From the sequence record MW349128.1: a stretch of DNA of 64,000 nucleotides. One strand, given 5' to 3'. A program made the position numbers and the translations under genes. Under the pieces are notes generated by a model. It saw nothing but the letters and a program-made list of their open reading frames with translations. It did not search any database and was not told the DNA's origin. Position 1 is the stretch's first letter; every line of letters starts with the position of its first letter. Below, piece by piece: positions 1,701 through 62,190 of this stretch.

Positions 1701-3373
1701 ATGGTTAGATTTTTACTCAAGAAAAAGGATTTAGAAAATGTTCCAGTTGTAACTAATCATGAATCAATTGATAAGAAAGGTGATTTCACTGAAGATGGTA
1801 TCTTCAGTGAGAAAATCTTTGGTCCTGATTCAGAAGCAGATAATATTACTAATGAAGCTATTGTAGATTTAGGTAATAATTATATTTTAAATCCGTTAGG
1901 TTATGAACGTGTTAAAAAATTAATTGGTAATAAAAGATTCCAAGAAATTATTAGTTCTGAAAAACCTATTGATGAAAATGGTAATGTAATTGAACCTGAA
2001 GATGATCATAACTCTTATATTGGTTTAATTGAATTTAGAAAGAATTTCTTAAAAATTCTTAAAGAAGAAGTTAAACGTGAAAAACGTAAAACTAAAGATT
2101 ACAATAGAGTAGTACAATGGTATTTATCTGATTTACTATTCCAAAATTATGTAACTGTATTTAGTCCTAAATTAAGACCTGCTACAGTTAATAAAGCTAC
2201 TAAAACTTTTAGACATTCTGAAATTAATAAAGATTATAATTTATTAATTGCTCATAGTAATAGTATTAAAGAACTTGATAGACATTATACAGATGATTCA
2301 GTAGAGTTACAAAAATTAAATCTATTAAGTAAAATTCAAGATGATAGTATTAATATTAGTGATCGTGTAATTAATGAGAATATTAAAGGTAAAGGTGGAA
2401 CTATTCGTAAATTACTAATGGGTAGTCGTGTTGGTTTTTCTGCACGTTCAGTAATTGTTCCAGCACCTGATCTTAAATTAAATGAAATTAGATTAAATTA
2501 TACTATTTTCTTAGAAGTTTATAAACCTATCTTAGCAAATTTAATGTATGTAACAGAAAATATTCCTTTAGCTAAAGGTGAAGAAATATTAGACAGAGCA
2601 CTAGATACATTTAATCCTAAAGTATATAAATATATGAGAGAACTAGTTGATAAAACTGAAAATGGAATGAGAGTTATTTTAAATAGGAATCCCAGTATTA
2701 GTGAAAGCTCAGTTCAAATATTGAAAATTAAAGATATTATTCAAGATATAGAATCATCAGTAGTAGGTATTAGTAATAATATACTTGCTGGTATGGGTTA
2801 TAAAGGTAGCCTTTCATTATAGTGATATAATGTCAAAAGAATTTTAATTGCTGAGAAGATTATTAAATTAATCAGCATCGATCAAAATGATTGTTCAACG
2901 ACTAAATAAATTCACTCACTAATATGAGTTTGATATAGTCTAATCTTCATAGAAAAATCTCTATGAAGTTAATATACATGGCCGATTAAATAATAGTCGC
3001 TTTAAATTGAGAGATTTATAGAAAAGAATATTAATTGCTGAGAAGATTATTAAATTAATCAGCATCAAGTTAATACAATTTGTTCAACGACTAAATATAT
3101 TCTACCTTAAATGGTAATGATATAGTCTCGTCTATATGATAATATTTATATAGATTAAGATAAACGTATGATGGTGATACTTTAAATATTATAGCACTAT
3201 TTTCAGAAGAACAATACGAACAGTTAAAAGTTCAAGATCCAGTAAATCAATTAATTTCATATAATGATGGATTATTTAATAGAACTTACTCGCTTAATAA
3301 AGACTCACAAATAGCTGTTTATTTACTAAATAACCCTAAATCAAAAAATGTAGGTATTAAAGCTAGTGAATAA
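1701..3373 (+). CDS. rpoC: Non-virion RNA polymerase beta' subunit, N-terminal catalytic part. Spliced: join(1701..2798,2981..2986,3167..3373), 436 aa
   Basis: Motifs EDGIFSEKIFGP, LMGSRVGFSARSVIVP and LNRNPSI are present. Removing two group I introns restores ATG GGT GCC GAT TAT GAT GGT GAT = MGADYDGD (the NADFDGD motif) followed by TLNII...LLNN. Confidence 0.9.
2799..2980 (+). ncRNA. Group I mini-intron R1 (182 nt, no ORF) in RNAP beta'
   Basis: P1 GGU/UAU pairs with GUAGCC, with U-G at the splice site. Core motifs: ttaattgctgagaa (P), aatcagcat (Q), gttcaacgacta (R), gatatagtc (S). P3 gaattt/aaattc. Ends ...tacatG. Confidence 0.9.
2981..2986 (+). other. 6-nt micro-exon GCCGAT (Ala-Asp of the RNAP catalytic ADYDGD motif)
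   Basis: It lies between the terminal G of R1 and the P1 splice site of R2, and it supplies exactly the two missing motif residues in frame. Confidence 0.85.
2987..3166 (+). ncRNA. Group I mini-intron R2 (180 nt, no ORF) in RNAP beta'
   Basis: P1 CGAU/UA pairs with UAGUCG. P, Q, R and S motifs are present. P3 gaatat/atattc. Ends ...taaacG before TAT GAT GGT GAT. Confidence 0.9.
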
Positions 3374-3381
3374 GTAATTTT

Positions 3382-3408
3382 AATGGATAATCTTTATGAT
3401 TATCCATT
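3382..3408 (+). terminator. Probable intrinsic terminator after rpoC-like gene
   Basis: Stem aatggataatc/gattatccatt followed by a T-rich tract. Confidence 0.6.
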
Positions 3409-3444
3409 CTTATTATACTTTATAAATATGGAGGATTTTATAGA

Positions 3445-4020
3445 ATGATAAAATATAAAACGAATAATGAAAAGAATTTAATCGATATGGCTGAAAAATC
3501 GTTAGATATATTTTATGAAGAAATTTATAAAGAATTACTTAAGATTGATCAGGATTATATTAATCAAGATATTATTAATGATATTATAAAAGAATCTAAC
3601 ATTTTTAAAGATAATTCTAAAAAACATATTAAAAAGATTGTTAACAATGATATTAATAAAGTTGTAAGTGTAACTTTAACTACAACACATTATGAAATAT
3701 CTAGATTTTTATGTAATACTTTTGCTGAAAGACTTAATATGGTTTTAAATGCTTTATATAGAGTTAATAAAGGAACTTTAGGACATAAATATGAAAATGA
3801 ATCATTAGGAATAAGTGGTACTTATGATATAACTGATGGAATTAATACGTGGAAAAACGAATTAATTTCAGAAATATATAATACAACTAATTTCTTAGAA
3901 AATGTCATTAAAAGTAGAATTAGAAAATATATTAGAAGTAATTTTAATTATAAAAAATTAGATAATACTGGTGCTTATACATTTAACAATAATATTTTTA
4001 TTGATAGACTATTAAATTGA
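3445..4020 (+). CDS. Hypothetical protein
   Basis: 191-aa ORF with GGAGG RBS. Confidence 0.7.
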   Translation: MIKYKTNNEKNLIDMAEKSLDIFYEEIYKELLKIDQDYINQDIINDIIKESNIFKDNSKKHIKKIVNNDINKVVSVTLTTTHYEISRFLCNTFAERLNMVLNALYRVNKGTLGHKYENESLGISGTYDITDGINTWKNELISEIYNTTNFLENVIKSRIRKYIRSNFNYKKLDNTGAYTFNNNIFIDRLLN

Positions 4021-4668
4021 ATGGAGAAATGCGACATGAATAAACGACAAAGAAAAAAGTTAGAAAAAGAAATTAAATTAGAAAACTCAAATAACGAAAA
4101 AATTATAGATTTGCCAAAAAATAATATTAAAAAGGATGATTCAAAAATGACTAAAAAACAAACAACTACTAAAGGTACACCAAAATTAACTAAAGAACAA
4201 GTTCACTTTATTGCTGGTTTAATCGATAAAGGACATGGTAATACTTACATTTTAAAAGAATTCAAAGAGAAATATGGAATTGAAAGAAAAACTCACACTA
4301 TTACTCATATTCGTAGAGCTGAATATTTTGGACATTTAACTGAAGATTATAGATTTGCTAAAGAAGGATATCCTACATTTAACGAATATAAGAAAATTTT
4401 ACGTGGAGACGATGTTAAACCAAGTAAAGTAGAATTAGCTGTAGAAACTGTAGTTGAATCACCTACAGTAGAGAAAACAAAAGAAGCTGCAGAAGGTCTT
4501 AAAAATAAAACAGAAGAAAAAGCTAAAGATATTAAATCTAAAATGCAAAATGTTCAAAAAGATCCTGAAACTGGTAAAGAATATCGTGATAATGTAGATA
4601 TTAAAAAAGCAGGAAAACAAGAATCTATCTTTGATAAGATTGTTCGAAAAATTATTAATCTATTATAA
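4021..4668 (+). CDS. Hypothetical protein, possible helix-turn-helix DNA-binding domain
   Basis: KLTKEQVHFIAGLI...EKYGIERKTHTITHIRR resembles phage HTH segments. The remainder is Lys/Glu-rich. Confidence 0.55.
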   Translation: MEKCDMNKRQRKKLEKEIKLENSNNEKIIDLPKNNIKKDDSKMTKKQTTTKGTPKLTKEQVHFIAGLIDKGHGNTYILKEFKEKYGIERKTHTITHIRRAEYFGHLTEDYRFAKEGYPTFNEYKKILRGDDVKPSKVELAVETVVESPTVEKTKEAAEGLKNKTEEKAKDIKSKMQNVQKDPETGKEYRDNVDIKKAGKQESIFDKIVRKIINLL

Positions 4669-4682
4669 TATAAAAGAAAGAA

Positions 4683-5744
4683 GTGTTAATCTACATGAGT
4701 AAATACGATTTAACTTTATACCATCATTTAAAACAGAATGTTAATCCATGTAGATTAACTTCTTCTCAAGATGAAACAATGGTTAGATGTCCATTTTGTG
4801 GTGATTCTAAAAAATCTAATAAATCAACACATATGTATATTCAAAATAATACACCATTTAAATATTTCTGTCAGAGATGTAATGCTTCAGGAGTTATGAA
4901 TAGTAAAGTATTAGAAATGCTAAACTCTAATCAAGCTGATATTGGTAGTTATATTAATAGTGAATATAATAATTATTTATCTAACTTAAATAGAAAATAC
5001 GGTAAAAGTTTTATAGATAGAAATACTAAAATATTAGATTACTATCCAGATCAATATAATGAATTAGAAATAGGAAAAATTAATTATATCAATGAAAGAT
5101 TAGGAATTAATATTAGTGAATCAGATATTGATTTATATAAACTGATATTAAATATAAATGATTTCTATAGAAAAAATAATTTTGATATGGACAATACGCT
5201 TCAAATAAATACATTAAATCAAAATTATTTTAGTTATATGTTAAATGATAGAAACACTATAAATTGTAGAAAAATGTTTAATGAAGTTACTGGTAGAAAA
5301 CACTTTAAACAAAAGATATTTAAAAATCTAGCAGAAGAAAGTAATAGATTTTATTCAATCACGAATAATTTGGCATTGGATCAAAATGTGTATAACATTC
5401 ATATAGCAGAAGGTTTCTTTGACATTATATCTATATTTAATCATATTCATAATAGGGAGATAAATGACAATGATTTATTTATAGCTAATAATGGAAAAGG
5501 ATATAAATTTGTATTTGATTATTTAAGTAAATTAGGTTTACTTAATATGAATATAAATATTTATTCAGATAAAGATGTTAAATTATCAGATTATAAAAGT
5601 TATAGAATGTTGGGCAATTCAATTGCAGTTAAACTTAATGATGCTAATATTTATTACAATTTACATGAAGAAGAAAAAGACTTTGGAGTTCCTAAAGAAA
5701 GAATTAAATTATCAGATCCAATATTATTTAGTAGTATTAAATAA
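4683..5744 (+). CDS. DNA primase (Zn finger plus TOPRIM)
   Basis: N-terminal CPFCGDS...YFCQRC zinc-binding motif. TOPRIM-like IAEGFFDIISI and YSDKD. Confidence 0.8.
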   Translation: MLIYMSKYDLTLYHHLKQNVNPCRLTSSQDETMVRCPFCGDSKKSNKSTHMYIQNNTPFKYFCQRCNASGVMNSKVLEMLNSNQADIGSYINSEYNNYLSNLNRKYGKSFIDRNTKILDYYPDQYNELEIGKINYINERLGINISESDIDLYKLILNINDFYRKNNFDMDNTLQINTLNQNYFSYMLNDRNTINCRKMFNEVTGRKHFKQKIFKNLAEESNRFYSITNNLALDQNVYNIHIAEGFFDIISIFNHIHNREINDNDLFIANNGKGYKFVFDYLSKLGLLNMNINIYSDKDVKLSDYKSYRMLGNSIAVKLNDANIYYNLHEEEKDFGVPKERIKLSDPILFSSIK

Positions 5745-5750
5745 GAAATA

Positions 5751-5763
5751 AATATATATTATA
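5751..5763 (+). promoter_or_regulatory. Putative early promoter motif (A)TATATATTATA. Other copies near 7783, 8791, 10131, 14658, 18222, 19461, 21987 (variant), 62328 (variant) and 43833 (minus strand)
   Basis: The same motif is repeated upstream of accessory gene blocks, usually followed by a hairpin and an RBS. It resembles the TATATTAC-type early promoters of phiKZ-related phages. Confidence 0.65.
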
Positions 5764-5816
5764 AATAGGTAATGAGCAAATATTATAACGCTCATTACCT
5801 ATATTAAATTATTAAA

Positions 5817-6344
5817 ATGGAGAGTGAAATGGATATGTCAAACAAACAAGAAATTTTTACATTTGAAGAAATATTTAAAGAATTAACGGATTTTCAAACA
5901 AGTAGTAAATTGGAAGAATTTCCTAATAAGAATATTTTAAAAGGTATATTAGAGAATATCAGTAATAAGAGAGATTTAGAAAATAATAAAATGTATATAA
6001 GTATCAATATTAATAATTCACTAAAAGAATTAAAGAACATTGAAGATAATATAATTGATATCTTCAAAGATAATGAAGTTAATGAAACTGATAAAGAGAA
6101 TATCAGTACTTTATTAAAAACATCAAGTGATATTAAAACAAATATTAATAAAGATGATTATAAATCAGTATTAATATTAGAAACATCTTTAGATGAAATT
6201 ATTAATAAAATTAATAAAGATGAATTTAATAATAAAGATCTTAAAGAACTTTATGTATCAACTTATAATAATTTATCAGTAACATTAATGTCATATAAAT
6301 TACTTAAATTAATAGACGGATTTGACAAAATTAAAAACGGATAA
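5817..6344 (+). CDS. Hypothetical protein
   Basis: 175-aa ORF after an early promoter. Confidence 0.7.
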   Translation: MESEMDMSNKQEIFTFEEIFKELTDFQTSSKLEEFPNKNILKGILENISNKRDLENNKMYISININNSLKELKNIEDNIIDIFKDNEVNETDKENISTLLKTSSDIKTNINKDDYKSVLILETSLDEIINKINKDEFNNKDLKELYVSTYNNLSVTLMSYKLLKLIDGFDKIKNG

Positions 6345-6358
6345 GGGTGAAATGAATT

Positions 6359-6976
6359 ATGAAAAATAAATTTCTAATATTTCAAGATAAAGACAATAAT
6401 AATTATTTATTATTGTCTAATTTTGAATTTAATAAAAAGGTTAAACCAGATTACACGCATGATATAAAAGATATTAATGAAGTTGTTAAATTCAATAAAA
6501 AAGGAAAAAATCAATTTAAAATGAGATTTGATTTCCATACAGGTCATATCGTTAGATTTAATGAATTTTACAATTATCTAGATAATATTGATAAAGACTT
6601 TAAAAATTCAAATGCTAAAATTATTGATAATATTATGAATTCTGATTTAAAATCAGTTGATAAAGTTAATATTATTTATACAGGAAATAAAACAGAAGAT
6701 AATGAAATAATTAAGACTAACTTATACTTTATTATACCTGTTGATATTGATACCATTGAATTAAACGAACATATTTCTAAAATAGATACTACTCTTATGA
6801 ATAAACGTTTAAATGATGTTTTTAAATCAGAGACGGTGAATCAGAAAATTCTTAATCTTAAACCAAGCGTAACAGAGATTAATATACTATCTAAACAGAG
6901 TAAAATTATAGATGAATATTTTAAAGATATTGATCAAGAATATAATTTTATTAATGAATTTAGTAAATCAGAATAG
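6359..6976 (+). CDS. Hypothetical protein
   Basis: 205-aa ORF with RBS. Confidence 0.7.
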   Translation: MKNKFLIFQDKDNNNYLLLSNFEFNKKVKPDYTHDIKDINEVVKFNKKGKNQFKMRFDFHTGHIVRFNEFYNYLDNIDKDFKNSNAKIIDNIMNSDLKSVDKVNIIYTGNKTEDNEIIKTNLYFIIPVDIDTIELNEHISKIDTTLMNKRLNDVFKSETVNQKILNLKPSVTEINILSKQSKIIDEYFKDIDQEYNFINEFSKSE

Positions 6977-6995
6977 AAAGAATGTGTTTTAAATT

Positions 6996-7721
6996 ATGAT
7001 GGATTTAATAAATAAATTAAATTTTATATCATTGATATTAAATATACCTTTCTTATTAATATCAATATATATTACATTTTATTTTTATACCTATAAGAAT
7101 ATAAAAGATAAAAAGAATAGTATATATGATATTGCTCCAGTTTCTTTTACAGTTTATTTAAGTTTATTATTAATAATATTTTTACAAATTATAATTGATG
7201 ATATATCTTCATATGGAAATTTAATATGGAATTGGAGCATTTTAATCGTAATATTAAGTGCAATAATTATTAATATATTATTAGATTTAGCATTTGTTGG
7301 TTTTATTAAAATGAAAAGTATTTTAAGAATATTTATTGTTGCTAATATATTTTTATTTGGTTTATTAATATCCGATTCTTCTATATTAAATTCAGTATTT
7401 ATGTTTTTTATAATGATATTACTTATAATAACGGTATTACATTATTCTTCAGATTATGGAATATATAAAGATAAAAGTATGAGAGTTACTTTTGCCTCAT
7501 TCTTTTCTTTATTTCCATTAATATTTTCAATACTAATTTTAAATATGAATACAATAAATTTTGAATTATCGCATTACAATATTAATAATAATGTCAATGA
7601 AAAATATATAATTATATCAATTCAAATATTATTATTACTATGGAATATGGTTGTAATTATATTTAAAGGTTTCAATATTAATATTTACACAGTAATAAAA
7701 GAATTAATAAAATTGAGGTAA
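6996..7721 (+). CDS. Polytopic membrane protein
   Basis: About 7 hydrophobic segments. Confidence 0.7.
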   Translation: MMDLINKLNFISLILNIPFLLISIYITFYFYTYKNIKDKKNSIYDIAPVSFTVYLSLLLIIFLQIIIDDISSYGNLIWNWSILIVILSAIIINILLDLAFVGFIKMKSILRIFIVANIFLFGLLISDSSILNSVFMFFIMILLIITVLHYSSDYGIYKDKSMRVTFASFFSLFPLIFSILILNMNTINFELSHYNINNNVNEKYIIISIQILLLLWNMVVIIFKGFNINIYTVIKELIKLR

Positions 7722-7761
7722 TGATCATTAATTTGATCATTACCTCTAATATTTTTTTTTT
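7702..7761 (+). repeat. About 60-bp terminator cassette, copy 1 (inverted copy at 42931..42990)
   Basis: Hairpin gaggtaatgatca-ttaatt-tgatcattacctc (7715..7746) plus a T tract. Its reverse complement matches 42931..42990. Confidence 0.8.
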
Positions 7762-7855
7762 TTCGTAATTATCATTTATTTAAATATATATTATAATAAT
7801 GAAGATATATAATATATAATGATATATCTTAAATAAATAAAAAGGAGATGAATTA

Positions 7856-8098
7856 ATGTTTATATTAGATATAATAATTGCTTTATTATATTATACGTTA
7901 ATACCAGTAGCGATAGCTTTTGGATCTTTTGAAATTTCTAAATATTTATCTACTTATTTAGAGAATTATATATTTAAAAGAAAATTAAGCTTAAGGACAA
8001 AACTTATATTAGCAATATCACTTGTAATGTTAACATCAATAGTAAAATCAATAGTTGAAATGCGAGTACATGTTGTATCTAGTTTTCTAGGTCTATAA
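7856..8098 (+). CDS. Small membrane protein
   Basis: 80 aa, two hydrophobic segments, AGGAG RBS. Confidence 0.65.
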   Translation: MFILDIIIALLYYTLIPVAIAFGSFEISKYLSTYLENYIFKRKLSLRTKLILAISLVMLTSIVKSIVEMRVHVVSSFLGL

Positions 8099-8116
8099 TT
8101 TTCTATGATCCAACAA
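8088..8116 (+). repeat. Repeated element taggtctataattttctatgatccaacaa (copies 8088, 9086, 10539; partial 11696)
   Basis: Identical 29-mer in three intergenic or gene-end positions, each just upstream of an RBS. Confidence 0.85.
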
Positions 8117-8144
8117 AAAATAAGAATTAACGGAGGAATTTATT

Positions 8145-8774
8145 ATGATAAAAGTAAATAAAAAAGTTAAAAAGGGTTTATTCAATAATGGCATTAAAAT
8201 TAAAACAGAAAATACTTATACAAAAGTAATTAATGAATATACAGATATTCTAAATGATACGATTAATGATGAAGATCTTAAAAATAATGTAGTTTTTAAA
8301 GATAGTCTTAAATTTATCATTTATTATGTAGGAAAGCTTAGAGAAGATGCTTTATTACAAAATCAAGATAATGAAACTAAATTAGATATTTTTGAATTAT
8401 CTAAGGATTTAAAATATTTTAAATCTATTCTTGATAGTAAATTATTTGACTCTAAATTGATACTTCAATCAACAGGTTTTAAATTAACAAATGGAAACTC
8501 ATATTCAATGATAATAAAAAGTATTAAAAATTTATTAGATGAATTGATAAAAACAATCAATGATAAAGATAATAAAATAATTTACGAAAATGCTTATCAT
8601 TATCTTAATGAATTAAATATCTTCTTAGAAAATAAAACAAATATTGAAAAGGAGATACGAGTAAATAAATATGACATATTAGAATTTATACCAAATAATG
8701 AAAATATAGATAAAGATGAATTTTATATTATGGTTAACCATTTATATGATTTAGGTGTTTTAGAAAAAGCGTAA
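8145..8774 (+). CDS. Hypothetical protein
   Basis: 209-aa ORF with GGAGG RBS. Confidence 0.7.
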   Translation: MIKVNKKVKKGLFNNGIKIKTENTYTKVINEYTDILNDTINDEDLKNNVVFKDSLKFIIYYVGKLREDALLQNQDNETKLDIFELSKDLKYFKSILDSKLFDSKLILQSTGFKLTNGNSYSMIIKSIKNLLDELIKTINDKDNKIIYENAYHYLNELNIFLENKTNIEKEIRVNKYDILEFIPNNENIDKDEFYIMVNHLYDLGVLEKA

Positions 8775-8860
8775 TGTATACTAAAATAAGTATATATTAT
8801 AATAATGAAGAAAGATAAAATATTAATATCTTTCTAATAAAAATTAAAGGAGAAATTATT

Positions 8861-9028
8861 ATGAAAAACTTAGTATTAAAAACATTAGTGGGATTTGGAG
8901 TAGGAATCGTATTAGGAGTAATTAACAATAAGATTGACGAATTAATTATGCAAAAGGAAATGGAAAAACAAGTTCTTAAAAGAGCTTCAGAAATAACGTT
9001 TGAACATCCGTTTTCTAATTTAGGATAG
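8861..9028 (+). CDS. Small membrane-anchored protein (55 aa), paralogue of 10201..10368; missing from the ORF track
   Basis: MKNLVLKTLVGFGVGIVLG...MQKEMEKQVLKRASEITFEHPFSNLG, with AGGAG RBS. Confidence 0.75.
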   Translation: MKNLVLKTLVGFGVGIVLGVINNKIDELIMQKEMEKQVLKRASEITFEHPFSNLG

Positions 9029-9134
9029 AGGAGGAAAGAGGATAACTGTTTTAAAGACTTAATGAATATAATGTATCAAGTTCATTAGGTCTATAATTTT
9101 CTATGATCCAACAATAAAAAGGAGCTAAAAATCA

Positions 9135-9443
9135 ATGAATAACAAAAATAAATTAGTAGAGTTAAGAAAAGAATTAAAAACTGTATATTCAAATATAGGA
9201 ATAAACAGATCATTCACTATAAGAGAAAGACTTCATAAAGAAAAAGAAAGATTAATTAAAGAAATTAATGAACTAGAAAAAGATGAAAAAACTTTCGATA
9301 GAGAAAAACATATAGCGAGAGTTAAAGATCAGAATAATGATAATATTTACAAAGGATCAGATGAATTTTCTAAAGCAGGTAGACTTCATAGAAAATATCA
9401 GAAACAAGAGAAACACGCAATTTTCAATAATTCAGAACAATAA
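9135..9443 (+). CDS. Hypothetical protein, paralogue of 10772..11077
   Basis: Shared KAGRLH motif and N-terminal coiled coil. Confidence 0.7.
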   Translation: MNNKNKLVELRKELKTVYSNIGINRSFTIRERLHKEKERLIKEINELEKDEKTFDREKHIARVKDQNNDNIYKGSDEFSKAGRLHRKYQKQEKHAIFNNSEQ

Positions 9444-9456
9444 AGGAGAAATAATT

Positions 9457-10104
9457 ATGTTAAAAATAAATAAAAGTAATTTAAAAGAGTCAAATTTAGA
9501 ATTTTCAGGAATTAAAGATTCATATCAAAAAGCTATAGATTATATTGATTTAGCATTTTTAGGAGATCAAAAGCATATAGTTAAAGGAAATGAATTTGTT
9601 AAGTTATTTTTAGAAAAAGAAAAAGAATTAAATACTGAAAAATATAATGGAAAATTAAGTAGATTAGATGTAATTTCAGTTAATGATTCTTTGAAATTCT
9701 TAATGAGAATCATGAATAATGAAATTCTAAATCCTAGAAATATTGTAGAAGAGAATACAATATCTTTATTAAACAAAGAAGATTGGAAATTAACTCATAA
9801 ACATATTATAAGATTATGTAATCAAATTATCCAACTTAATAATGAAGAACCTGAACAACAAAATGGTCTATATTATTTTTACATTATACAAAAAACTTTA
9901 AAAAATAACGAAATAGAAAATGTTAATAACATTGAAGATCTTAGAGAATTAATTATCGAGCTAGTCTATATGGATATTGATATTGAATATTTTGAAGATA
10001 AAAATTATGTAACATGGGATAATGTATTAATAGAAGAATATTTTGGAAGAGATATTGATATTATTGTAGATCAATTAATTAATAGTAAATCAGTTGAATT
10101 TTAA
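9457..10104 (+). CDS. Hypothetical protein (start moved from 9337 to the RBS-supported ATG)
   Basis: AAAGGAG RBS precedes ATG at 9457. Confidence 0.65.
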   Translation: MLKINKSNLKESNLEFSGIKDSYQKAIDYIDLAFLGDQKHIVKGNEFVKLFLEKEKELNTEKYNGKLSRLDVISVNDSLKFLMRIMNNEILNPRNIVEENTISLLNKEDWKLTHKHIIRLCNQIIQLNNEEPEQQNGLYYFYIIQKTLKNNEIENVNNIEDLRELIIELVYMDIDIEYFEDKNYVTWDNVLIEEYFGRDIDIIVDQLINSKSVEF

Positions 10105-10200
10105 AAAGCGTAACGTATAATAAAATAAGCATATATTATAATTATGAAGAAAGAGTTAATGATAATCTCTTTCTTCATAAAATTAATGGAGGAATATATT

Positions 10201-10368
10201 ATGACAAAATTATTATTGAAATTATTAGCAGGATTTGGATTAGGAATTGTGATGGGAGTTGTTTTAGACAAGATTGAAGAAATGTCTATGCAAAAAGAAA
10301 TGGAAAAACAAGTTTTTAAAAGAGCTTCAGAAATAACTTTTGAACATCCGTTCGCTAAATTAAAATAA
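10201..10368 (+). CDS. Small membrane-anchored protein (55 aa), paralogue of 8861..9028
   Basis: MTKLLLKLLAGFGLGIVMG...MQKEMEKQVFKRASEITFEHPFAKLK, with GGAGG RBS. Confidence 0.75.
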   Translation: MTKLLLKLLAGFGLGIVMGVVLDKIEEMSMQKEMEKQVFKRASEITFEHPFAKLK

Positions 10369-10384
10369 AAAAGGAGGAAACATT

Positions 10385-10483: not shown

Positions 10484-10595
10484 GGAGTTGAAAAAGATAC
10501 TGTTTTAAAGAGACCTAATGGACATGGATCAAGTTCATTAGGTCTATAATTTTCTATGATCCAACAAAAAACTAAAAAGAAAAGGATGATTTATT

Positions 10596-50923: not shown

Positions 50924-52258
50924 TTATTTAAAGTTTCTATAGAAATCATCAAGTCCATTAAGAACAGATTCTTCTAAGAAAACTTTAATAGTTTTATTAC
51001 TTTCTTTAATTGAAGCTAATTGAGATCCTTTATCGTAAATGATATTAGATTCATCAGCTTTATCAAATCCCATATCTTCAGCGATATATTTGATATTGTC
51101 TGAATTTTCTTTAATATAAGTTAAAACTTCTCTAGGAGAAAATTCTGTAACTTTACCGTTAGAAAACATATCAATTGATTCATTAACCATTTGTAAATCA
51201 CTAGTATTGTAATTATTATGATTCTCTGAAATTATATTTTGGATATAAGAATCTTGATGTGATGGAATTACACGTTATCTTAACTATATGATTTTCATAT
51301 AGACGAGACTATATCTTCCTAATTTATATTAGGTAATATATTTAGTCGTTGAACGGAATTTAATCCGATGCTGATTATCTTAATAAAGATTTCCAGCAAT
51401 TAATATTATTTATACTAAGCAATAATTTTTTACCCAGTCATACGTACATCTTAGCTATATGGTTTCCATATAGACGAGACTATATCATACTCTTAGTAAG
51501 AGCGAATATATTTAGTCGTTGAACAACTTGTATTAAGTTGATGCTAATTGGCTTAATTAAACTTCTTAGCAATTAATATTCTTTTTCATTATATATCACT
51601 ATATAAAGCTGCTATAATTTAACAGATTAATCTTAAAGGTTTAGTAACTTCTACTTCACCATTAGGTTTTCTTTCTATTTTACTAAAACCACGCATTGAG
51701 AAAGATACATCAGATTTTTGTCCAATTAAACCTTTCATATCCTTACCAGCTGATGTTTGAGCTGTTTCTACTTCTCCCATTAATTTATTACCATTCCACC
51801 AAGTTCTAGTGATAATATGAGAAATATTACGTTGATCAATATACATTTGACGTTTAGGTTCATCACTTAAAGGATGACCTGCAAATTATTATTCTTTATT
51901 ATTTTAATAAAGATTAGACTATATCATCTAGGTTATATATTTAGTCGTTGAACAACTTGTATTAAGTTGATGCTGATTACTTTAAATAAGATTTCAGCAA
52001 TTAATATAATTTAACGTGAGCCATTTTAACCTAAAACTCACCATAAAAAGTTCTTCTTGCTAATTTTTCTTGTACTACTGGACTATCTAAACCACTTTGG
52101 ATAACATCTTTACGATAAACACGACCATTACGGTTTTGTCTATCAGCTTCTTGTAACTCAGCAATGAATCTAACTGATTTATTATTATCTTGAACTACTT
52201 CTGGTTGAGAAGTTGTATTAGATTCATTAATAATGTAAGCTTTAATATCTTTAGACAT
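50924..52258 (-). CDS. Prohead core protease (T4 gp21-like). Spliced: complement join(52036..52258,51622..51881,51432..51442,50924..51272), 280 aa
   Basis: Motifs LQEADRQNRNGRVY, GESGHP, SFSMRG and CYDWVVIPSH are contiguous only after removing three group I introns. The exon sum of 843 nt is in frame. Confidence 0.88.
51273..51431 (-). ncRNA. Group I mini-intron PC (159 nt, no ORF) in protease
   Basis: P1 ACUGGGU/GCUUAGU; P10 GUAAU/AUUAU. P, Q, R and S motifs present. Ends ...taacG. Confidence 0.88.
51432..51442 (-). other. 11-nt micro-exon TATGACTGGGT (Y-D-W-V)
   Basis: Lies between the terminal G of PB and the P1 site of PC, and restores CYDWVVIPSH. Confidence 0.85.
51443..51621 (-). ncRNA. 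Group I mini-intron PB (179 nt, no ORF) in protease
   Basis: P1 CUGU/UA with UAGCAG. P4 covaries (ttgcta/ttagca). R and S motifs present. Ends ...gtacG. Confidence 0.88.
51882..52035 (-). ncRNA. Group I mini-intron PA (154 nt, no ORF) in protease
   Basis: P1 GUGAGU/GCUCAC with U-G; P10 CA/UG. P, Q, R and S motifs present. Ends ...aatttG. Confidence 0.88.
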
Positions 52259-54044: not shown

Positions 54045-54228
54045 AATAAATGAATTTAATTACTTTTAATAATAGTTTTATTATTCTTTTTAAATTTAAT
54101 AACAATAACATATGAAAGTAAAAATACCCTTGAATATAATGGTTATTTTATTTCTTAACAAATTTATATAATAAAATTAATAATATAAAACTACACGCTA
54201 ATATATTTGAAAAGGAGCAGAAAAAATT

Positions 54229-55824
54229 ATGTTGAGTGCAAATAGAATTAAAGATGAATTCTCTAAACTCTTAGAGGATATCGAACAAAATATCAACGAA
54301 CAGTACAAATTAAGTACAGTTGGTAATGACTTCGCTTCAATTGCTACTGATGACGTAGTATTTGAAAGTTATAAAGATCAATTATTAGAAGGTTTTGATG
54401 AAGAGGAGCAGCTTTCTTTAGAAAGTATGTTAGATAATACTCGTGAAGAAATCTTATTAGAGTCTTCAATGGGACCTATCCAACCTTATGCTTCATTATC
54501 TATGCCTATCTTAGTTAAACTTTGGGCTCGTTTAGCTTTAACTGAAGCTTTACCAACTCAAGTTGCTAATAAACCACAATTCACAGTGCCAATCTTAACA
54601 CCTTACGTTGTAGATGCTGATGGAAACAAACATGCATTACCTGAATCAATTAATAACACACCTGAAACTTTAGTAGGATTAGTTCCTCTTAAAGAAGAAG
54701 TTACAATTTCTGGTGGTAAAGTTGAAGCTTACGATTTATTCGATGGCTTAAAAGAAGGTAAAGAAGTTCGTAAAGGCATTGATCGTGTTGACCGTAAATT
54801 CAAAGTTGTAGAAGCTAAATGGAGCGATTCTTTTGATGTACGTACAAACGAAAAAGGATTTGTTGAATTAGGTTCTCAAGTTATTAAAATGGAAAATGAC
54901 TCTCTAATGGCAGAAGTTAAATACCCTACAAATGGTGACGGTGAAGTTGCTGTTGATACAGTATTAGGTAAAGTTGACGTTTCTAACGGTACTTTAGCTT
55001 TAGCTTCAACTTCTGGTAAATTAGAAGCAATTAAAATTAAAGGTTATGTAGCTTCTGAACAACATACTTCAGCTACTAACATTGAGCTTGGTTTAGATCG
55101 TAAAGATATCACTATCGATACAGCTCAACACATCGAGGCTACAGTACCTCTTGAAGTAATTCAAGATATGAAAGCTACTTATGATATCGATGGAGTTGCT
55201 CGTTTATCTGAAACAATGTCTCAATTATCTAGTCAAAAAGTTGACTTAGATATCATTGAATTCTTAGATCACGAATACGAAGAAACTGATGCTAAATATC
55301 ACTTCAGCTTCGATGTTTATCCACATAGTGATTACAGTGCTCACCCTAAAGATTGGTTAGAAGGTCTACGTGAAGTAATTGACCATACTACACAATCAAT
55401 GAAAAATGATTACAAACTTTACGATGTACAATTCGTTATCGTAGGTAACCCAGTTGACGTTCGTTTAATCCCTAACGTTTCTTGGACATTTAATGGTGGT
55501 ACTGAAGATTCTTACTCTAACGGAATCAAAATTAACTATTCATTAGGTGCTGCTTCAGGTACTGCTAACTACCGTATTATCGGTTCTGACTTAGTTCGTC
55601 AAGGTGAATTGACTATTATTGCAATTCCTCAACAAGACAACTATAAAACATTCATGTTCTACCCTTACACATTCAACGTTGTAAATGGTGGAGGATACTT
55701 GAATACTCGTAACCCTAATGTTCCTAACATGATGATGACTCGTAGATATACAGTTGAATCATTTGTTCCGATCATTGGTCGTATTACAATCAAAAACAAC
55801 AACGGTTCAGTATACGCTCGTTAA
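54229..55824 (+). CDS. Major capsid protein precursor
   Basis: 531 aa with strong high-expression codon bias, two late promoters and a strong terminator. It lies between the protease/scaffold genes and terminase. Confidence 0.8.
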   Translation: MLSANRIKDEFSKLLEDIEQNINEQYKLSTVGNDFASIATDDVVFESYKDQLLEGFDEEEQLSLESMLDNTREEILLESSMGPIQPYASLSMPILVKLWARLALTEALPTQVANKPQFTVPILTPYVVDADGNKHALPESINNTPETLVGLVPLKEEVTISGGKVEAYDLFDGLKEGKEVRKGIDRVDRKFKVVEAKWSDSFDVRTNEKGFVELGSQVIKMENDSLMAEVKYPTNGDGEVAVDTVLGKVDVSNGTLALASTSGKLEAIKIKGYVASEQHTSATNIELGLDRKDITIDTAQHIEATVPLEVIQDMKATYDIDGVARLSETMSQLSSQKVDLDIIEFLDHEYEETDAKYHFSFDVYPHSDYSAHPKDWLEGLREVIDHTTQSMKNDYKLYDVQFVIVGNPVDVRLIPNVSWTFNGGTEDSYSNGIKINYSLGAASGTANYRIIGSDLVRQGELTIIAIPQQDNYKTFMFYPYTFNVVNGGGYLNTRNPNVPNMMMTRRYTVESFVPIIGRITIKNNNGSVYAR

Positions 55825-55851
55825 GAGTAACTTTACTTTTGTTATTTATAT

Positions 55852-55880
55852 ACCCATACATCTCTCTGAGGTGTATGGGT
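55852..55880 (+). terminator. Intrinsic terminator after capsid gene
   Basis: Stem acccatacatctc/gaggtgtatgggt plus T tract. Confidence 0.8.
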
Positions 55881-55908
55881 TTATTTTATAAAAAGAAAGG
55901 AAAATTAT

Positions 55909-57078
55909 ATGGTATCTTTAAAAGAAGAAATACAATTAAATAAAATAAATAAAATAATGAACATCAATGAAGATGCATTTAACTTTGGTAAAAATACTTC
56001 ATTACTAAAAGAAATAGATGAAGAATTTGATTCATTAATTAGTAAATATAATTTTGAAAAATCTGATTTTGATGTAATTGATAAGAATGAATACAATGAT
56101 ATTGCAAAAAGAATATCAGATATTGCTAAGAAATTATTTAACACTAATATGAAATTAAAATTTATTGAAGCCGATAAGCGTGGAAAAGATAAATTTAGAG
56201 TAGGTTCAGTAGCACATACATTAATTAAACCTGAAGATATTAGAAATATTACAGATGGAATCACTAAAATTGTTATTGAAGAAAAAAATGGTATTTACTA
56301 TTCTAAACCTAGAGAAATTGAAGTAAATATTGAATTATCTTCATTGAGATATTTTATAGAAAAGAAAGAATCAGGTCAAAAAGAATTTACTACTCTTAAT
56401 GGTAGAATGTATACCTTTTTATTATTACATGAAATAGGTCATAATTTATTTTTCCCTGTAGAAATTAATGTACTCTCTGGTGGTAAAACTCCTACATTCG
56501 AACTCAAATATAAAGATAATAAACCAGTTCAGTTTAAGTACACTAAAGAAATAGAAGCTGACACTAGAAGAAATAGAGTATTAGCAGCTCCTATGATTCT
56601 TGCAATGTCAACATTAGTAATGTGTTTAACTGCTGTATTTATAGGTGCTAGCATATCAATGGGTTCATTTATGGGAACAGGAATGTTACTAACAAGTGCA
56701 AGTTTCAATAGAAAAACTACTATGGATTATAATCTTTCAGAAAGATCTGCCAACCAATTACCTGCTCTTTATGGATATTCTGTAGAAATGGTTAAATTTT
56801 ATGATTTAGTGTATAAAGCATTTAGAATGAAATCTGAAAAAAGACCTAATAACTTAATAGCTAAAGCTATGAGAGGACTTTTATATCCTATGAGTGGTTT
56901 TATTAAAAGTTATAAAGATTATCCAACAGATTCAATTGATGCAGTTATTAAGACATTAAAATTTGAAATTAGTAACAATAATAATTCTAATGAAGTTAAA
57001 AAAGAACTCAAAAGACAATTAGATGAAATTCAAAGAATAATAAAATATTCTAATAGACTTAATACTAAGACAAGATAG
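55909..57078 (+). CDS. Hypothetical protein with HExxH zinc-peptidase motif
   Basis: FLLLHEIGHNL, with later ERSANQL and a hydrophobic segment. Confidence 0.6.
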   Translation: MVSLKEEIQLNKINKIMNINEDAFNFGKNTSLLKEIDEEFDSLISKYNFEKSDFDVIDKNEYNDIAKRISDIAKKLFNTNMKLKFIEADKRGKDKFRVGSVAHTLIKPEDIRNITDGITKIVIEEKNGIYYSKPREIEVNIELSSLRYFIEKKESGQKEFTTLNGRMYTFLLLHEIGHNLFFPVEINVLSGGKTPTFELKYKDNKPVQFKYTKEIEADTRRNRVLAAPMILAMSTLVMCLTAVFIGASISMGSFMGTGMLLTSASFNRKTTMDYNLSERSANQLPALYGYSVEMVKFYDLVYKAFRMKSEKRPNNLIAKAMRGLLYPMSGFIKSYKDYPTDSIDAVIKTLKFEISNNNNSNEVKKELKRQLDEIQRIIKYSNRLNTKTR

Positions 57079-57092
57079 TAAGAAAGAAGTGA

Positions 57093-60000
57093 ATGAAGAC
57101 TATGGCTATAACAAAATTAAAGAAAAAAATTTATTACGATTATAAAACTAATAACGTAAGCTTTTTAAGAGTTGCTAAAGAACTTAAAGATAATAATATA
57201 CAAAATTATGGTCTACCATTAACTCTATATGATAAGAAATTAATTGGCGTTGATCCTTGGGATGAAGATTTAGATAATGAAATGAAAACTCGTGTTATTA
57301 GGGAAGCTAAACTTAATATATGGTTTTATTTAAGAGAAGTTATCAGAGTTCCAGTTCCAGGTGGTAAGGTAATGTATGAACTTCATAGAGGTAACTTAGC
57401 TATGACGTTTTGTATGCTGCATAATTTAGATACTGCAATAATGTTACCACGTCAGCACTATAAAACATATTCTGCAGTATGTTATTATTCATGGATTATG
57501 TTATTGGTAGGTAATAACTATACAATGTTATTTACACATAAATCATACTCGGACACTACTGAAAACCTTAAAAGATTAAAAAATCTATTCAAAGAGAAGT
57601 GTTTACCTGAATATGTATTAGCTAACTTTGGAGATAAAAATGATAGAGATAAAATTAATGAATTTTCTTTAGCAAGTAATAACAACACAATAAAAACAGT
57701 ATCACCTCCAACAAATGCTGAGAGTAAAATACGTGCTCTCATTAAACTCTATTAACTGCTGAAAAAGATACTAAACCAATCAGCATCAATCAAATTGATT
57801 GTTCAACGACTAAATATAGAGATAATTAATATTATAAGATATAGTCTAGTGTGTATGAATATCATACAATGTATTACGGCAAACAAAGCAGGAAGAGGTA
57901 GCACCGTATGTAGATGCAGTGCATAAAGATTTTTAATTGCTGGAAGACTAATAATGAAGTTAATCAGCATCACTTTAATTAGTGTTCAACGACTAAATAA
58001 AATCAATTTTAATAATTTTTACTGTTAACATTCCTTTATCAGTACGATAACGGAGGGATAAAATGCCTAAAGGTGTTAAAAGTAAAGAAAAATTCATAGA
58101 ACAAAAAAATAAAACTTTTAAAGAAATAAAAGATATCAATGGAGATAAATTTGAAATACTGGGAGAGTATAAAAATTCTAAAGAACCAATTAAATGTCAT
58201 TGTAATATATGTGATAGAGATTTTTTCTTACCTACTGAAAAACTAAGATTAAAAAGAAAATTCTGTAATAGAAAAGATTGTAGATATTCAGAAAAACCCA
58301 AGAATTCTAAAGGTAAAGAAACTTTTTTAATAGAATTAAAAGATAAGTTCGGATTTAATTATACTTATATTGAAGGATTCAATGGAATGAATAAAAAGTG
58401 TAGATTCCGTTGTGGAAAATGTGGAAATATAAGATATTTTGCAAAGCCTTCTACTCTAATGGATAAAAGAAAGAAGTATAATTCAGTAAACTGTAACAGA
58501 TGTATAAATAATGAAAATTATATCATATTAGATAGTCAAGAATTATCTAAAAAGACAACAGAAGAGTTTCAAGGTGAATTAGATATGATATTTGGATATA
58601 ATAAATTTAATGTGTTAACTGAATATACTAGGAGCAAAGATTATATCTATTTGAAGAGTAATGACTGTGGACACAAATTTAAAACGAGACCAGATGATAT
58701 ACTTAAAAGAAAAAGATGTAGTGTATGTTCTAAAAGTATAGGAGAAATTGCCATCATTGAATTACTTCAAGAGAATAATGTAGAATATGAGAATGAAGTT
58801 ACTTTTGAAGGATCTAGTTTTAGATTTGATTTTTATTTTAAAAAAATAAATACTGTAGTTGAAGTAGATGGAAAAGGTCATATAAAAGGTTATGGAAATT
58901 TCATTAATGATAAAAGAAACAAAAGCAAAAGAACACCTGAAGATATAAAAAAATTAGATAATGAAAAAGATGAATTTATAAGAAGCAAAGGAATAAATAT
59001 GATACGTCTCCCTTACCAGAATAGAATAAATGAAGAATTAATTATCCCTATGAAAAAATTATTAAAATTATGATATAGTCTGATCTGCATGGATTATCAT
59101 GTAGTTTAACGTAAATGACCTATGGTTTGGCTTGATGAGTGGGCGTTTATACCGCATAATCAAGTAATGTTTGAAGCGATGAGTAAAAAGGCTCCATCTT
59201 TATAGAAATATAGATGATGAATAATATTAACTGCTGAAAAGTTTAAAAACCAATCAGCATCATTAAATAATGTTCAACGACTAAATTTATTAAATCTTAA
59301 AAAGATTATGATATAGTCTGATCTGCATGGATTATCATGCAGCTAACATAAATGACCAGCAATAAGTACAGCTTCAAGAATTGCAAAAGAAAATGGTTCT
59401 CCTTATGGACTTCTTATCACAACTACACCTAAAATGACTGGGTGAAGATAAATTAAAATTTATCTTAAGGACTTTATTAATTGCTGAAAGGTCCTTAGAG
59501 CTTAATGAGCTACAACGTGACTGGCAACAGTGAGCGTGATATGCTTAAAAATCATTAAGATTGGAAAATCAGCAGCTAATTTTCAATTTAATAAATTATT
59601 AAATCAATAATGAACAACTCTTTATACAAAAGATGTAGGAGTTGGTAATTTTGGATTTTTATGAAAAATTAAATAAAAAATTTGATAACAGTATAATAAC
59701 AAAAGAAAAATATATAAACGGCAATGAAAAGATTAAATTCTATTGTAAAAATTGTAAAAATTATTTTTATTCTAAACCTAGAAAAATTATTGAATCATCT
59801 TATAAATCATGTCATTTATGTAGGAAAAGGGAAAAAGAAAATATATTTAGGAATAATCTCATTAATATGATAAATAAAGAAATATATGAAATTATTGAAA
59901 TGAAAGATCCTATAAAAAATAATGAAAAATTTTCTTTAAAACATAAAGAATGTGGAAATATCTTTTCTATATCAGTGAGTAATTTTAAAAAAGGAAGAAA

Positions 60001-62190
60001 ATGCCCATATTGCTCAAATAAGCCTATGAAAAGGGATCAAAATTTCTTTTTAGAAAAAATAAATAATATTGATTCAAGTTTCTTAAAAGAATATGAATTA
60101 AAAAGCAATTATATAAGCGTTAACGAAAATATTAAAATTAAACATAAAGAATGTGGAAATATCTTTAATACTACCCCTAATAGAATTTATAGAGGTAATA
60201 GATGTAGTATGTGTTCACATAAATCTGATAAATATAATTTTAAAGAGGTAAAGAGTATAATAGAAAAAGATGGAAAATTTAAACTTTTATCTAATAATTA
60301 TATAAATAATAAATATAAATTAAAAATAAAATGTCTTAACTGTGGTAATATACAAGAGAAAAGTTTAGTTACATTTCAAGATAAAAGAAATAGAAAATGT
60401 ATATGTGAAAAATATTCTTTACCAATTCGTTATATAACAAATTTTTTAATAGATAAAAATATAAATTTTGAGCTAGAAAAAAGATTTGATAATTGTAGAA
60501 ATATTAGACCTTTACCCTTCGATATTTTTATAAATGATTTTAATATTCTAATTGAATATGATGGGGAACAACATTTTAAACCAATATATGGTATAGAAAA
60601 ACTCAATAAAACTAAAATAAATGATGAAATAAAAAATAATTTTTGTAATAAAGAAGGAATAGAATTAATTAGAATAAACTGTTATGATAATTATGAAGAT
60701 AAAATTGAAAATTTAGTTCAACGACTATCGAAAGTTGAGTATACATCGTGAGGATATATACAATATAAATGAGTAGAGTACAGCCAAGCGGTTAGTTTTT
60801 AAGTGATATTAGCTTAATATAATTCTATTAAATGGAAACATAAAGACGTGTATATTAACACATATACGTAAGATATAGTCTCAACGTTTAGGGAAAACCT
60901 AAAGAAGTTCATAAGAGAACTGGTATAGATTAGCGATCTATATTGAAGATTTTGAGTACTCTCGACACATCTCAAGGGCAATTTTTCTTTCAACAAATGA
61001 ATGAAGCAGCTCAATGGAATGAAAAAATATATGATTATTTTATTGATAGTGAAGAAGAAGGAAATTCTAAATTAGAAAAATACATGGAAGATAATTCAAA
61101 TAATGAATTCATGTATATAGAATATTCATATAAAGAATTAGGTAAAGATGAAAATTGGTTAGAAAAACAAAAGAGACAAATTGGTTCTTTAGAAGCTGTT
61201 AAACGTGAGATATTATTGGAATGGGCTTATAGTTCTGATGATTCATTATTCTCTGAAGAACAAATGACTGAAATATCTATGTATGCTAATAAAGAAATAT
61301 ATAATACTCTTGAATTTAATATTGATGGTAGAACTTATTATGTAAATATGATTAAATATATGGATAATATTACAGAGAAAAATTGGCTTATTGGTATTGA
61401 TATGTCTGGTGGTTTAGGACGAGATAATACAGCGTTTACTGTAGTGGATCCAGCTACTTTGGAACCAGTAATGACTTTTAAAAATAATGTAATTAATGGA
61501 CCTACATTCAGAAAATTAATTAAAGAATTGGTTAGTTTCTATATACCTAACGCTATATTAATACCTGAACGTAACTATGCAGGTTTAACAGTAATTGATC
61601 ATATGATATCTTATGATGGTTTAGAATCTAATTTATTCTATACGCTTAAAACTCGTGTAGCTGAAAAGCAAGTAGAAAATAAAAGTTTATTTAATGAAAT
61701 GTCTAGATATAGCAAAACTGAAAAAGTTAAAAAAGAAACTCGTAGATATGGTATTGATACAACTAAAAAATCTCGTGATATAATGTTAAATGAAATATTA
61801 TCTATGCTTGTTGAAGAAAAACCACATTTAATTAATAATAAACCACTTTTCCAAGAAATCAAATCTTTACAAATGATTAAAGGACGTATTGACCATCCAC
61901 CGGGAGGTCACGATGACTTAATGATGTCTTATTTATTCTGTTTATATGCGTATTACTATGAAAAAGATATTAATAAATTTGTAAAAATTAAATATGGTTC
62001 TAAACTCTCACCTAACAGTGAAAATGCAGAAGGAATGAAAAAAGAACAAGAAGCTAGAAGAAAAGATATTGCTTCAATTAAACGTATCAATAGTGTTATT
62101 GAAGGAAATGATATGAGTAATTCTATATTTGGTCAACAACAAAAACCAATGGATAACAATAATAAACGTATTATGGATTTATTCAAATAA
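57093..62190 (+). CDS. terL: Terminase large subunit. Spliced: join(57093..57725,57879..57907,59118..59184,59356..59430,60955..62190), 679 aa
   Basis: Walker A-like LPRQHYKT, then AGRGSTVP, Walker B VWLDEWAF, motif C LITTTP and nuclease IGIDMSGGLGRD and HDDLMM. The central motifs become contiguous only after removing four introns. Confidence 0.88.
57726..57878 (+). ncRNA. Group I mini-intron T1 (153 nt, no ORF) in terminase
   Basis: P1 UGAGAGU/GCUCUCA; P3 ctctat/atagag. P, Q, R and S motifs present. Ends ...ttacG. Confidence 0.9.
57879..57907 (+). other. 29-nt micro-exon (ANKAGRGSTV)
   Basis: In frame between T1 and T2. Confidence 0.85.
57908..59117 (+). mobile_element. Group I intron T2 (1210 nt), mini-intron-type core with a homing endonuclease ORF in the P8 loop
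   Basis: P1 GCACCGU/GCAGUGC. R motif lies before the ORF and S motif overlaps its stop codon. Ends ...aaatG. Confidence 0.88.
58063..59073 (+). CDS. Intron-encoded putative homing endonuclease (Cys-rich repeats plus Vsr/DUF559-like nuclease domain)
   Basis: Multiple CxxC motifs; C-terminal FRFDFYF...VVEVDGKGH...IRLPY. Confidence 0.8.
   Translation: MPKGVKSKEKFIEQKNKTFKEIKDINGDKFEILGEYKNSKEPIKCHCNICDRDFFLPTEKLRLKRKFCNRKDCRYSEKPKNSKGKETFLIELKDKFGFNYTYIEGFNGMNKKCRFRCGKCGNIRYFAKPSTLMDKRKKYNSVNCNRCINNENYIILDSQELSKKTTEEFQGELDMIFGYNKFNVLTEYTRSKDYIYLKSNDCGHKFKTRPDDILKRKRCSVCSKSIGEIAIIELLQENNVEYENEVTFEGSSFRFDFYFKKINTVVEVDGKGHIKGYGNFINDKRNKSKRTPEDIKKLDNEKDEFIRSKGINMIRLPYQNRINEELIIPMKKLLKL
59185..59355 (+). 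ncRNA. Group I mini-intron T3 (171 nt, no ORF) in terminase; 3' boundary anomalous
   Basis: P1 GAUG-AGU/GCU-C-CAUC. P, Q, R and S motifs present. Frame requires the exon to resume at CCA 59356, which makes A59355 the terminal base. Confidence 0.8.
59431..60954 (+). mobile_element. Group I intron T4 (1524 nt), full-size phage IA2-like, with a homing endonuclease ORF in the P6 region
   Basis: P1 CACCU/GGGUG; P10 AGU/ACU. Extended P5, aatcagcagc, gttcaacgactatcg, gtacagccaagcgg (P7.1/7.2 region), aagatatagtc and several P9 helices. Ends ...ttttG. Confidence 0.88.
59642..60751 (+). CDS. Intron-encoded putative homing endonuclease (Cys-rich repeats plus Vsr/DUF559-like nuclease domain)
   Basis: Repeated KHKECGNIF...CxxC; C-terminal LPFDIFI...LIEYDGEQHF. 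The 3' end overlaps the intron R motif. Confidence 0.82.
   Translation: MVILDFYEKLNKKFDNSIITKEKYINGNEKIKFYCKNCKNYFYSKPRKIIESSYKSCHLCRKREKENIFRNNLINMINKEIYEIIEMKDPIKNNEKFSLKHKECGNIFSISVSNFKKGRKCPYCSNKPMKRDQNFFLEKINNIDSSFLKEYELKSNYISVNENIKIKHKECGNIFNTTPNRIYRGNRCSMCSHKSDKYNFKEVKSIIEKDGKFKLLSNNYINNKYKLKIKCLNCGNIQEKSLVTFQDKRNRKCICEKYSLPIRYITNFLIDKNINFELEKRFDNCRNIRPLPFDIFINDFNILIEYDGEQHFKPIYGIEKLNKTKINDEIKNNFCNKEGIELIRINCYDNYEDKIENLVQRLSKVEYTS

Follow-up and report, generated by a model that had tools for sequence, protein, structure and literature searches.

Intron-interrupted genes in the Machias window

The sequence analysed here (the window, 64,000 nucleotides) comprises bases 1-64000 of the Staphylococcus jumbo phage Machias (MW349128.1, 100% identical), an AR9-like phage with a genome of 274 kb and 24.7% G+C. 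Three essential genes in it, those of the N-terminal beta' subunit of the non-virion RNA polymerase (RNAP beta'-N), the prohead protease and the large terminase (TerL), are interrupted by seven small elements without an open reading frame (ORF), and we are highly confident of their identity as genuine group I introns that splice in cis and have a reduced architecture. The boundaries were set by comparison with the uninterrupted genes of the sister phages MarsHill, PALS_2, UFV_DC4, PB50, Madawaska and AH12. This comparison bears out the seven introns of an earlier first-pass annotation at the lengths given there (R1 182, R2 180, PA 154, PB 179, PC 159, T1 153 and T3 171 nucleotides, nt). All seven are present in the range 2799-60954 as claimed, but two ORF-containing introns, T2 and T4, lie there as well. 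The first-pass annotation is also supported in that the seven have no ORF, are very AU-rich (73-78% A+U), fall below the Azoarcus intron (205 nt) in length and sit in essential genes at catalytic motifs.

The RNA polymerase gene

The beta'-N gene contains two introns with a very short exon between them (^ marks a splice junction here and below):

2799..2980, plus strand, intron R1, 182 nt, inserted after ...AGMG in the non-virion RNAP beta'-N gene
2981..2986, plus strand, micro-exon GCCGAT, 6 nt, separating R1 from R2 and encoding the Ala-Asp of the catalytic loop ADYDGD
2987..3166, plus strand, intron R2, 180 nt, placed by empty-site comparison between AD and YDGD

The exons 1701-2798, 2981-2986 and 3167-3373 sum to 1098+6+207 = 1311 nt, which is the length of the intact MarsHill gene. 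The spliced reading ...AGMG^AD^YDGDTLNI has AGMGADYDGDTLNI as its counterpart in MarsHill, whose intron-less gene runs AGMG-AD-YDGD with GCAGAC (also AD) at the position of the 6-nt exon. This match in exon sum places R1 and R2 on either side of a two-codon exon in the metal-binding loop of the polymerase. The 5' strand of the predicted P1 helix of R2 is the GCCGAT exon minus its first base, and each intron would therefore have to fold beside the end of its neighbour. GenBank annotates Machias beta'-N as ending at 2822 and leaves its last 68 codons (3167-3373) unannotated.

The prohead protease gene

The protease gene, on the minus strand, is broken three times:

51882..52035, minus strand, intron PA, 154 nt, within the codon joining FYGE^SGHP
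51443..51621, minus strand, intron PB, 179 nt, after ...LRLIC
51432..51442, minus strand, micro-exon TATGACTGGGT, 11 nt, separating PB from PC and encoding YDW and the first base of V
51273..51431, minus strand, intron PC, 159 nt, without P2

The intact PALS_2 gene of 843 nt aligns to Machias as four blocks, 52258-52036, 51881-51622, 51442-51432 and 51272-50924, which also sum to 843 nt (223+260+11+349). The spliced product reads FYGE^SGHP and LRLIC^YDWV^VIPSHQD, and PALS_2 has LICYDWVVIPSHQD at the site of the 11-nt exon. All protease introns are absent from PALS_2, S6, DC4 and SA1. Four exons are needed for this gene, whereas GenBank gives a three-piece join that appears to omit the 11-nt exon.

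The large terminase gene

Four introns interrupt terL, two of them small and two with an ORF:

57726..57878, plus strand, intron T1, 153 nt, after ...NAES, without P2 and with a weak P5
57908..59117, plus strand, intron T2, 1210 nt, same core type, at GSTV^PMVWLDE immediately ahead of the Walker B segment
59184..59354, plus strand, intron T3, 171 nt, between FEAM(R) and PAISTAS, junction AUGAG^U...AAAUG^ACC
59431..60954, plus strand, intron T4, 1524 nt, larger group I intron with extended P5 region, at TTTP^STLD, P1 CACCU/GGGUG

The five exons (57102-57725, 57879-57907, 59118-59183, 59355-59430 and 60955-62190) total 2031 nt compared with 2034 in the intact UFV_DC4 terL, with Walker B (LDEWAFIP) and the TTTP motif in frame. 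At the T1 site the intact UFV_DC4 protein reads NAES^ANKAGRGSTV. Five intron-less alleles, with DC4, Madawaska, LY01 and AH12 among them, keep Met-Arg-Pro-Ala at the T3 site (ATGAGACCAGCA, ATGAGGCCT, ATGCGTCCAGCT), and the frame-restoring T3 junction is placed as above because Machias homology to these alleles breaks between ATGAG and ACCAGCA. The T4 site is empty in PB50 (...ACCCCT^TCAACTCTC). Madawaska has neither T3 nor T4 and AH12 has none of T1-T3, while small ORF-less introns occupy the T2 site in Madawaska and LY01 and the T4 site in AH12 and LY01. In GenBank TerL appears as two "terminase large subunit" fragments, which are separated by a homing endonuclease and a hypothetical ORF.

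The homing-endonuclease ORF of T2 (58063-59073) is inserted in P8 and has no Pfam match. That of T4 (59651-60751) gives weak Pfam matches to CapR and DUF2726, a combination resembling the CapR + EDxHD/Vsr endonuclease family of phage group II introns (PMC12350094). Both ORFs encode Cys-rich repeat proteins, and DUF2726 is Vsr-like.

Fold and covariation of the small introns

The P, Q, R and S elements and the core helices P3-P4-P5-P6 and P7-P3'-P8 are present in the seven small introns, P8 being absent in PA only. P3, P4, P6, P7, P8 and P9 map cleanly, and P5 has 3-4 base pairs. Both R1 and R2 have P1, P2 and P3-P9. The P2 helix is found in R1, R2, PB and T3, where it carries the GNRA loops GUGA, GAGA, GUGA and GAAA respectively, and is absent in PA, PC and T1. 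In all seven AAU alone separates P7 (GACUA) from P3', which leaves no room for the P7.1/P7.2 that are an IA2-type feature; P5abc and extra P9 helices are also lacking, as the first-pass annotation had stated. The four core motifs that it took for a family signature turned out to be the generic P, Q, R and S elements of group I introns, matching the consensus of the Rfam model RF00028.

RF00028 aligns end to end to all seven copies with 25.3-45.5 bits and E values of 3.7e-10 to 1.6e-4, namely 26.8 bits for R1, 38.8 for R2 (E 2.8e-8), 32.6 for PA, 45.5 for PB, 41.6 for PC, 25.3 for T1 and 37.3 for T3; these matches came from slices no longer than about 1 kb. With the seven small copies of the window as its input, a covariance model (CM R1) gives 128.7 bits for R1, 131.9 for R2, 153.8 for PB, 133.4 for PC, 122.3 for T1 and 122.6 for T3. 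Scanned over the window, it detects the seven small introns, T2 in two halves and T4 by its 3' part, and no further copy in these 64,000 nt. Use of RF00028 together with a custom model, as had been proposed beforehand, thus returned sub-threshold matches to all seven from the former and copies both in the Machias genome and on IMG/VR contigs from the latter.

The pairings are supported by compensatory changes. The five P3 pairings quoted as covarying in the first-pass annotation are exactly as it gave them; P3 of T3 is UAAUAU/UUAUUA, with five base pairs and a U-U, and PB has a compensatory G-C to A-U change in P4. When 31 copies from the whole Machias genome were aligned, 96.3% of cells were paired and double-sided changes occurred in 25 of 31 pairs; the alignment was fitted to the model, which biases these values towards the structure. 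The covariation score was 0.585 compared with 0.149 after shuffling (reached in 0 of 500 shuffles), and sliding the partner by 1-3 columns lowered the paired fraction to 28-52%. The same compensatory changes are already visible in the MAFFT alignment of the seven copies. Minimum free energy folds recover P1, P2, P4-P6, P8 and P9, with z scores of -2.3 to -4.2.

The core is also seen as a repeated sequence. The 14-mer GTTCAACGACTAAA has eight exact occurrences and one with two mismatches in the window, with 0.46 expected at two or fewer mismatches; the count was reached by none of 100 shuffles and corresponds to about 20-fold enrichment. Two copies lie in the beta' gene, three in the protease gene (minus strand) and four in terL. 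Core identities between neighbouring introns are 55-83% and the nearest relatives are usually in other genes, which speaks against recent tandem duplication of neighbouring introns.

Splice sites and proposed splicing

The terminal U of the 5' exon is paired with G in R1, R2, PA, PB, PC, T1, T2 and T4, and a 3' terminal G stands directly before the restored exon in all seven small introns and in T2 and T4. A U-G pair at every 5' splice site had been claimed; this is the case for six of the small introns but not for T3 at its frame-restoring junction.

Read from sequence by comparison with the intron-less alleles, the junction positions and fold are defined and the genes are restored exactly. 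The introns would sit in the pre-mRNAs for non-virion RNAP beta'-N, prohead protease and TerL. Their removal would follow the usual course of two transesterifications. An external guanosine occupying P7 would attack after the U of the P1 U·G pair, the terminal G of the intron would then occupy the guanosine site while the 5' exon attacks the 3' splice site, and the exons would be joined to recreate an uninterrupted reading frame. Guanosine-initiated splicing in two steps, the catalysis behind it and any need for a protein are in this sense inferred.

An intron outside the window, in the virion RNA polymerase (vRNAP) beta'-N gene at the DFDGD motif (Machias ~115330-115495; our L011, 2283-2515), has a frame-restoring 5' splice site that follows C (GAUGGC^AAAA), opposite a guide A. 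Here a C·A wobble may replace U·G.

Copies beyond the window

In the whole Machias genome the covariance model detects 27 full compact cores and four that are ORF-interrupted. The genes concerned include nrdE, both DNA polymerase genes, gyrB, a virion protein gene and seven RNAP subunit genes. Full lengths are estimated at ~147-185 nt; for the 22 copies outside the window they are approximate, since an automatic P1 finder was used. Blast places 28 copies in Machias, 31 in LY01, 22 in AH12, 16 in PB50, 10 in Madawaska and 8 in MarsHill, while in PALS_2, S6, UFV_DC4 and SA1 the only matches are to the gene itself, with no dispersed copies.

A copy of 127 nt lies in LY01 terL (record OR836606.1; our L099, 2250-2376). 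It consists of P1 and P3-P8 without P2 or a P9 hairpin, scores 42.1 bits with RF00028 and lies at KAG^RGSTV, with an exon of 14 nt after it.

The exact Q..R pattern occurs in 84 stretches on IMG/VR contigs, mostly of 200-400 kb, and has no match in 185,579 bacterial and archaeal genomes. On the IMG/VR contigs the covariance model finds 240 compact cores of 116-165 nt from P3 to the terminal G, often in arrays. In contig 3300035283_000053 (our L036, 6150-7520) an RNAP beta' gene of an uncultivated phage carries six of them in a stretch of 1.2 kb; one intron follows ..NAD and a second comes shortly after FDGDTVSI, which indicates that the catalytic loop hit by R1 and R2 in Machias is targeted here too.

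Three complete cores of Machias, at 79271-79416 (minus strand), 205563-205713 and 227936-228083 (our L010, L012 and L013), stand directly upstream of three TnpB-like "transposase" genes, an IStron-like arrangement. They are each other's closest relatives, and one of them is inside a virion protein gene.

Since the small introns have no ORF, their spread must rely on something else. Endonucleases acting in trans are candidates, supplied by T2, T4 or the many free-standing endonuclease genes of the Machias genome; recombination during co-infection and reverse splicing at sites matching the short guide sequence are others. The guide type GCUC.. recurs in several copies from different genes, as do 5' exon ends like GAGAGU or (U/G)GGGU. 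These shared guides would fit a choice of site by guide pairing, as in reverse splicing, which we regard as only a lead. The 10-mer ATGACTGGGT occurs both at 51432-51441, in the 5' exon of PC, and at 59435-59444, in the P1 loop and guide sequence of T4.

Evidence against the assignment and alternative explanations

Several observations weigh against reading the seven elements as group I introns that are spliced in the manner proposed. Splicing in Machias is so far a prediction from sequence. None of the seven RF00028 scores reaches the gathering score of 50 bits, and RF00028 run on the whole window in gathering and E-value modes gave no match, nor did a 3.5-kb slice. The frame-restoring T3 junction follows G59183, so that G and not U stands at position -1. 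Finally, the helices are nearly all A-U, L9 is not GNRA, three copies are without P2 and one is without P8, which may make for poor unaided folding.

The low RF00028 scores reflect the limited sensitivity of a model made from larger introns and are not evidence against membership. Scores below the gathering score and empty whole-window scans are the reason why routine annotation misses these introns.

The T3 junction can be considered more closely. Its best P1 is GAUGAGU/GCUC(C)AUC, of the same guide type as T1 and PA, with the wobble at U59184, one nucleotide 3' of the frame-restoring position; canonical cleavage at U59184 would shift the TerL frame. A canonical alternative would be a 159-nt intron at 59201-59359, whose hairpin RF00028 aligns as P1; it keeps the frame at the cost of SKKAPSS in place of the conserved RPA. 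The T3 junction sequence of PB50 is identical, and the G at -1 is thus not a sequencing error.

The most serious alternative is that these are group I introns unable to fold alone, which would need a maturase or RNA chaperone of phage or host origin for splicing, or would splice in vivo only during transcription. The A+U content of 73-78%, the P5 of 3-4 base pairs, the absence of P8 in PA and of P2 in PA, PC and T1, the P9 helices without GNRA loops, and the lack of U·G at the frame-restoring site of T3 and of the vRNAP copy outside the window all point in this direction. On the other hand the core is complete and highly conserved, the P2 loops, where present, are GNRA as in small introns that fold by themselves, and the analysis came up with no candidate cofactor. 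Phage group I introns that have been tested, such as those of T4, SPO1 and Twort, for the most part self-splice. We regard a dependence on protein or on transcription as possible but as the less probable answer. Self-splicing is itself proposed tentatively: the introns could be the smallest natural group I ribozymes with a complete core, of 182 to 153 nt in the window, ~147 nt elsewhere in Machias and 127 nt in LY01 TerL (without P2 and P9), which would splice without protein and in some cases (T3 and the C opposite A in vRNAP) break the U·G rule. We consider this combined claim less likely than not to hold.

It is very improbable that the elements stay in the RNA and that the genes are truly split or decaying, with the fragments as separate subunits. 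GenBank does annotate beta'-N and TerL as separate fragments, and RNAP subunits of AR9-like phages are naturally split (bioRxiv 10.1101/2020.12.14.422802). But the breaks in Machias fall inside the ADYDGD catalytic loop, the leftover pieces are 2 and ~4 codons long, and the 6-nt and 11-nt exons could not be gene products on their own; the downstream pieces have neither start codons nor ribosome-binding sites, and the sister phages have uninterrupted genes. A dispersed repeat (REP-like or regulatory) that resembles the group I consensus by chance is more improbable still and already effectively refuted by the predicted exon restoration and the covariation, for although short AT-rich motifs are common at 25% G+C and GATATAGTCT, allowing one mismatch, is mildly enriched and only mildly so, the 14-mer is enriched far beyond this, five helices covary, RF00028 aligns end to end and the copies occur solely inside ORFs where excision restores the frame.

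Significance

If group I introns of this size do self-splice, the natural size limit of a complete core would lie well below the usual 200-205 nt, and the introns could serve as compact scaffolds for structural work and RNA circularisation. That Rfam thresholds miss them is already of practical consequence, as Machias beta'-N and TerL were for this reason deposited as fragments. The intron load is high, about 27 compact copies in addition to ORF-bearing ones in 274 kb, often back to back and separated by exons of 6-29 nt at catalytic motifs. Machias offers a cultivable Staphylococcus system for a phenomenon so far mainly documented from metagenomes. The AU-rich introns were also considered as a cause of the lack of growth of these phages at 37 °C, which proved uninformative since UFV_DC4, a relative free of introns, is handled at 30 °C as well.

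The first-pass annotation had offered two readings, a "minimal ribozyme subclass" and protein-dependent splicing, and these data establish neither. The novelty of the introns is also lower than was assumed there, as follows from the comparison below.

Comparison with known systems

Intron interruption of these Machias genes has been described before, and so has the abundance of small group I introns in jumbo phages. From protein alignment, Korn et al. (bioRxiv 10.1101/2020.12.14.422802) reported that the Machias genes for protease, terminase, polymerase, gyrase and RNAP are disrupted by introns; TerL was left unreconstructed, and no intron class, size or fold was given. They cite the introns of Twort, K-like phages, SPO1 and AR9 as precedents. 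Like those of Machias, the introns of these phages (for instance the multiple ORF-less introns of Twort orf142) occur in phages of Firmicutes with several group I introns per essential gene. In the P7-P9 region, Blast finds 86-90% identity over ~40 nt with introns of K-like Staphylococcus phages. The introns of Twort, K-like phages, SPO1 and AR9 are ~250 nt or more in length and belong to subgroup IA2, with P7.1/7.2, whereas the Machias copies have AAU alone between P7 and P3'.

Swarms of small introns are known from the gut "Jug" jumbo phages, where 2513 group I introns with a mean of ~206 nt and 18.5 per genome were described, splicing being confirmed in metatranscriptomes for 37 of 76 (PMC12880540, 2026). 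As in Machias, the introns are many, small and mostly ORF-less, and they split terL, polymerase and nrd genes (PMC12880540). The Jug phages differ in belonging to another phage lineage, with Bacteroides/Phocaeicola instead of Staphylococcus as hosts.

What appears undescribed in the literature found is the complete core at 127-182 nt. In reviews the size range of group I introns starts at 200 bp, and our literature search, of partial coverage, returned no description of complete-core group I introns of 127-182 nt; below 200 nt only degenerate fungal insertions of 56-81 nt have been claimed. These "group I" insertions in Phialophora rDNA resemble the Machias introns in being claimed below the usual size, but they are degenerate and miss most of the core (P2, P5, P6 and P9), whereas the Machias introns keep the whole catalytic core and P, Q, R and S (PMC3160393).

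An architectural parallel is the intron of the Azoarcus pre-tRNA-Ile (subgroup IC3, 205 nt), which is still called compact or unusually small (PMC13168695). It is minimal in the same way as the Machias introns, with P1-P9 but without P5abc, P7.1/7.2 or extra P9 helices and with a GNRA loop on P2. It differs from them in being G+C-rich and thermostable, in having a GNRA loop on L9 too, in its position in a tRNA anticodon loop and in being a proven self-splicer (PMC13168695). Compared with it, the Machias introns are 23-52 nt shorter, have 73-78% A+U and lie in protein-coding genes, some of them without P2 or P8.

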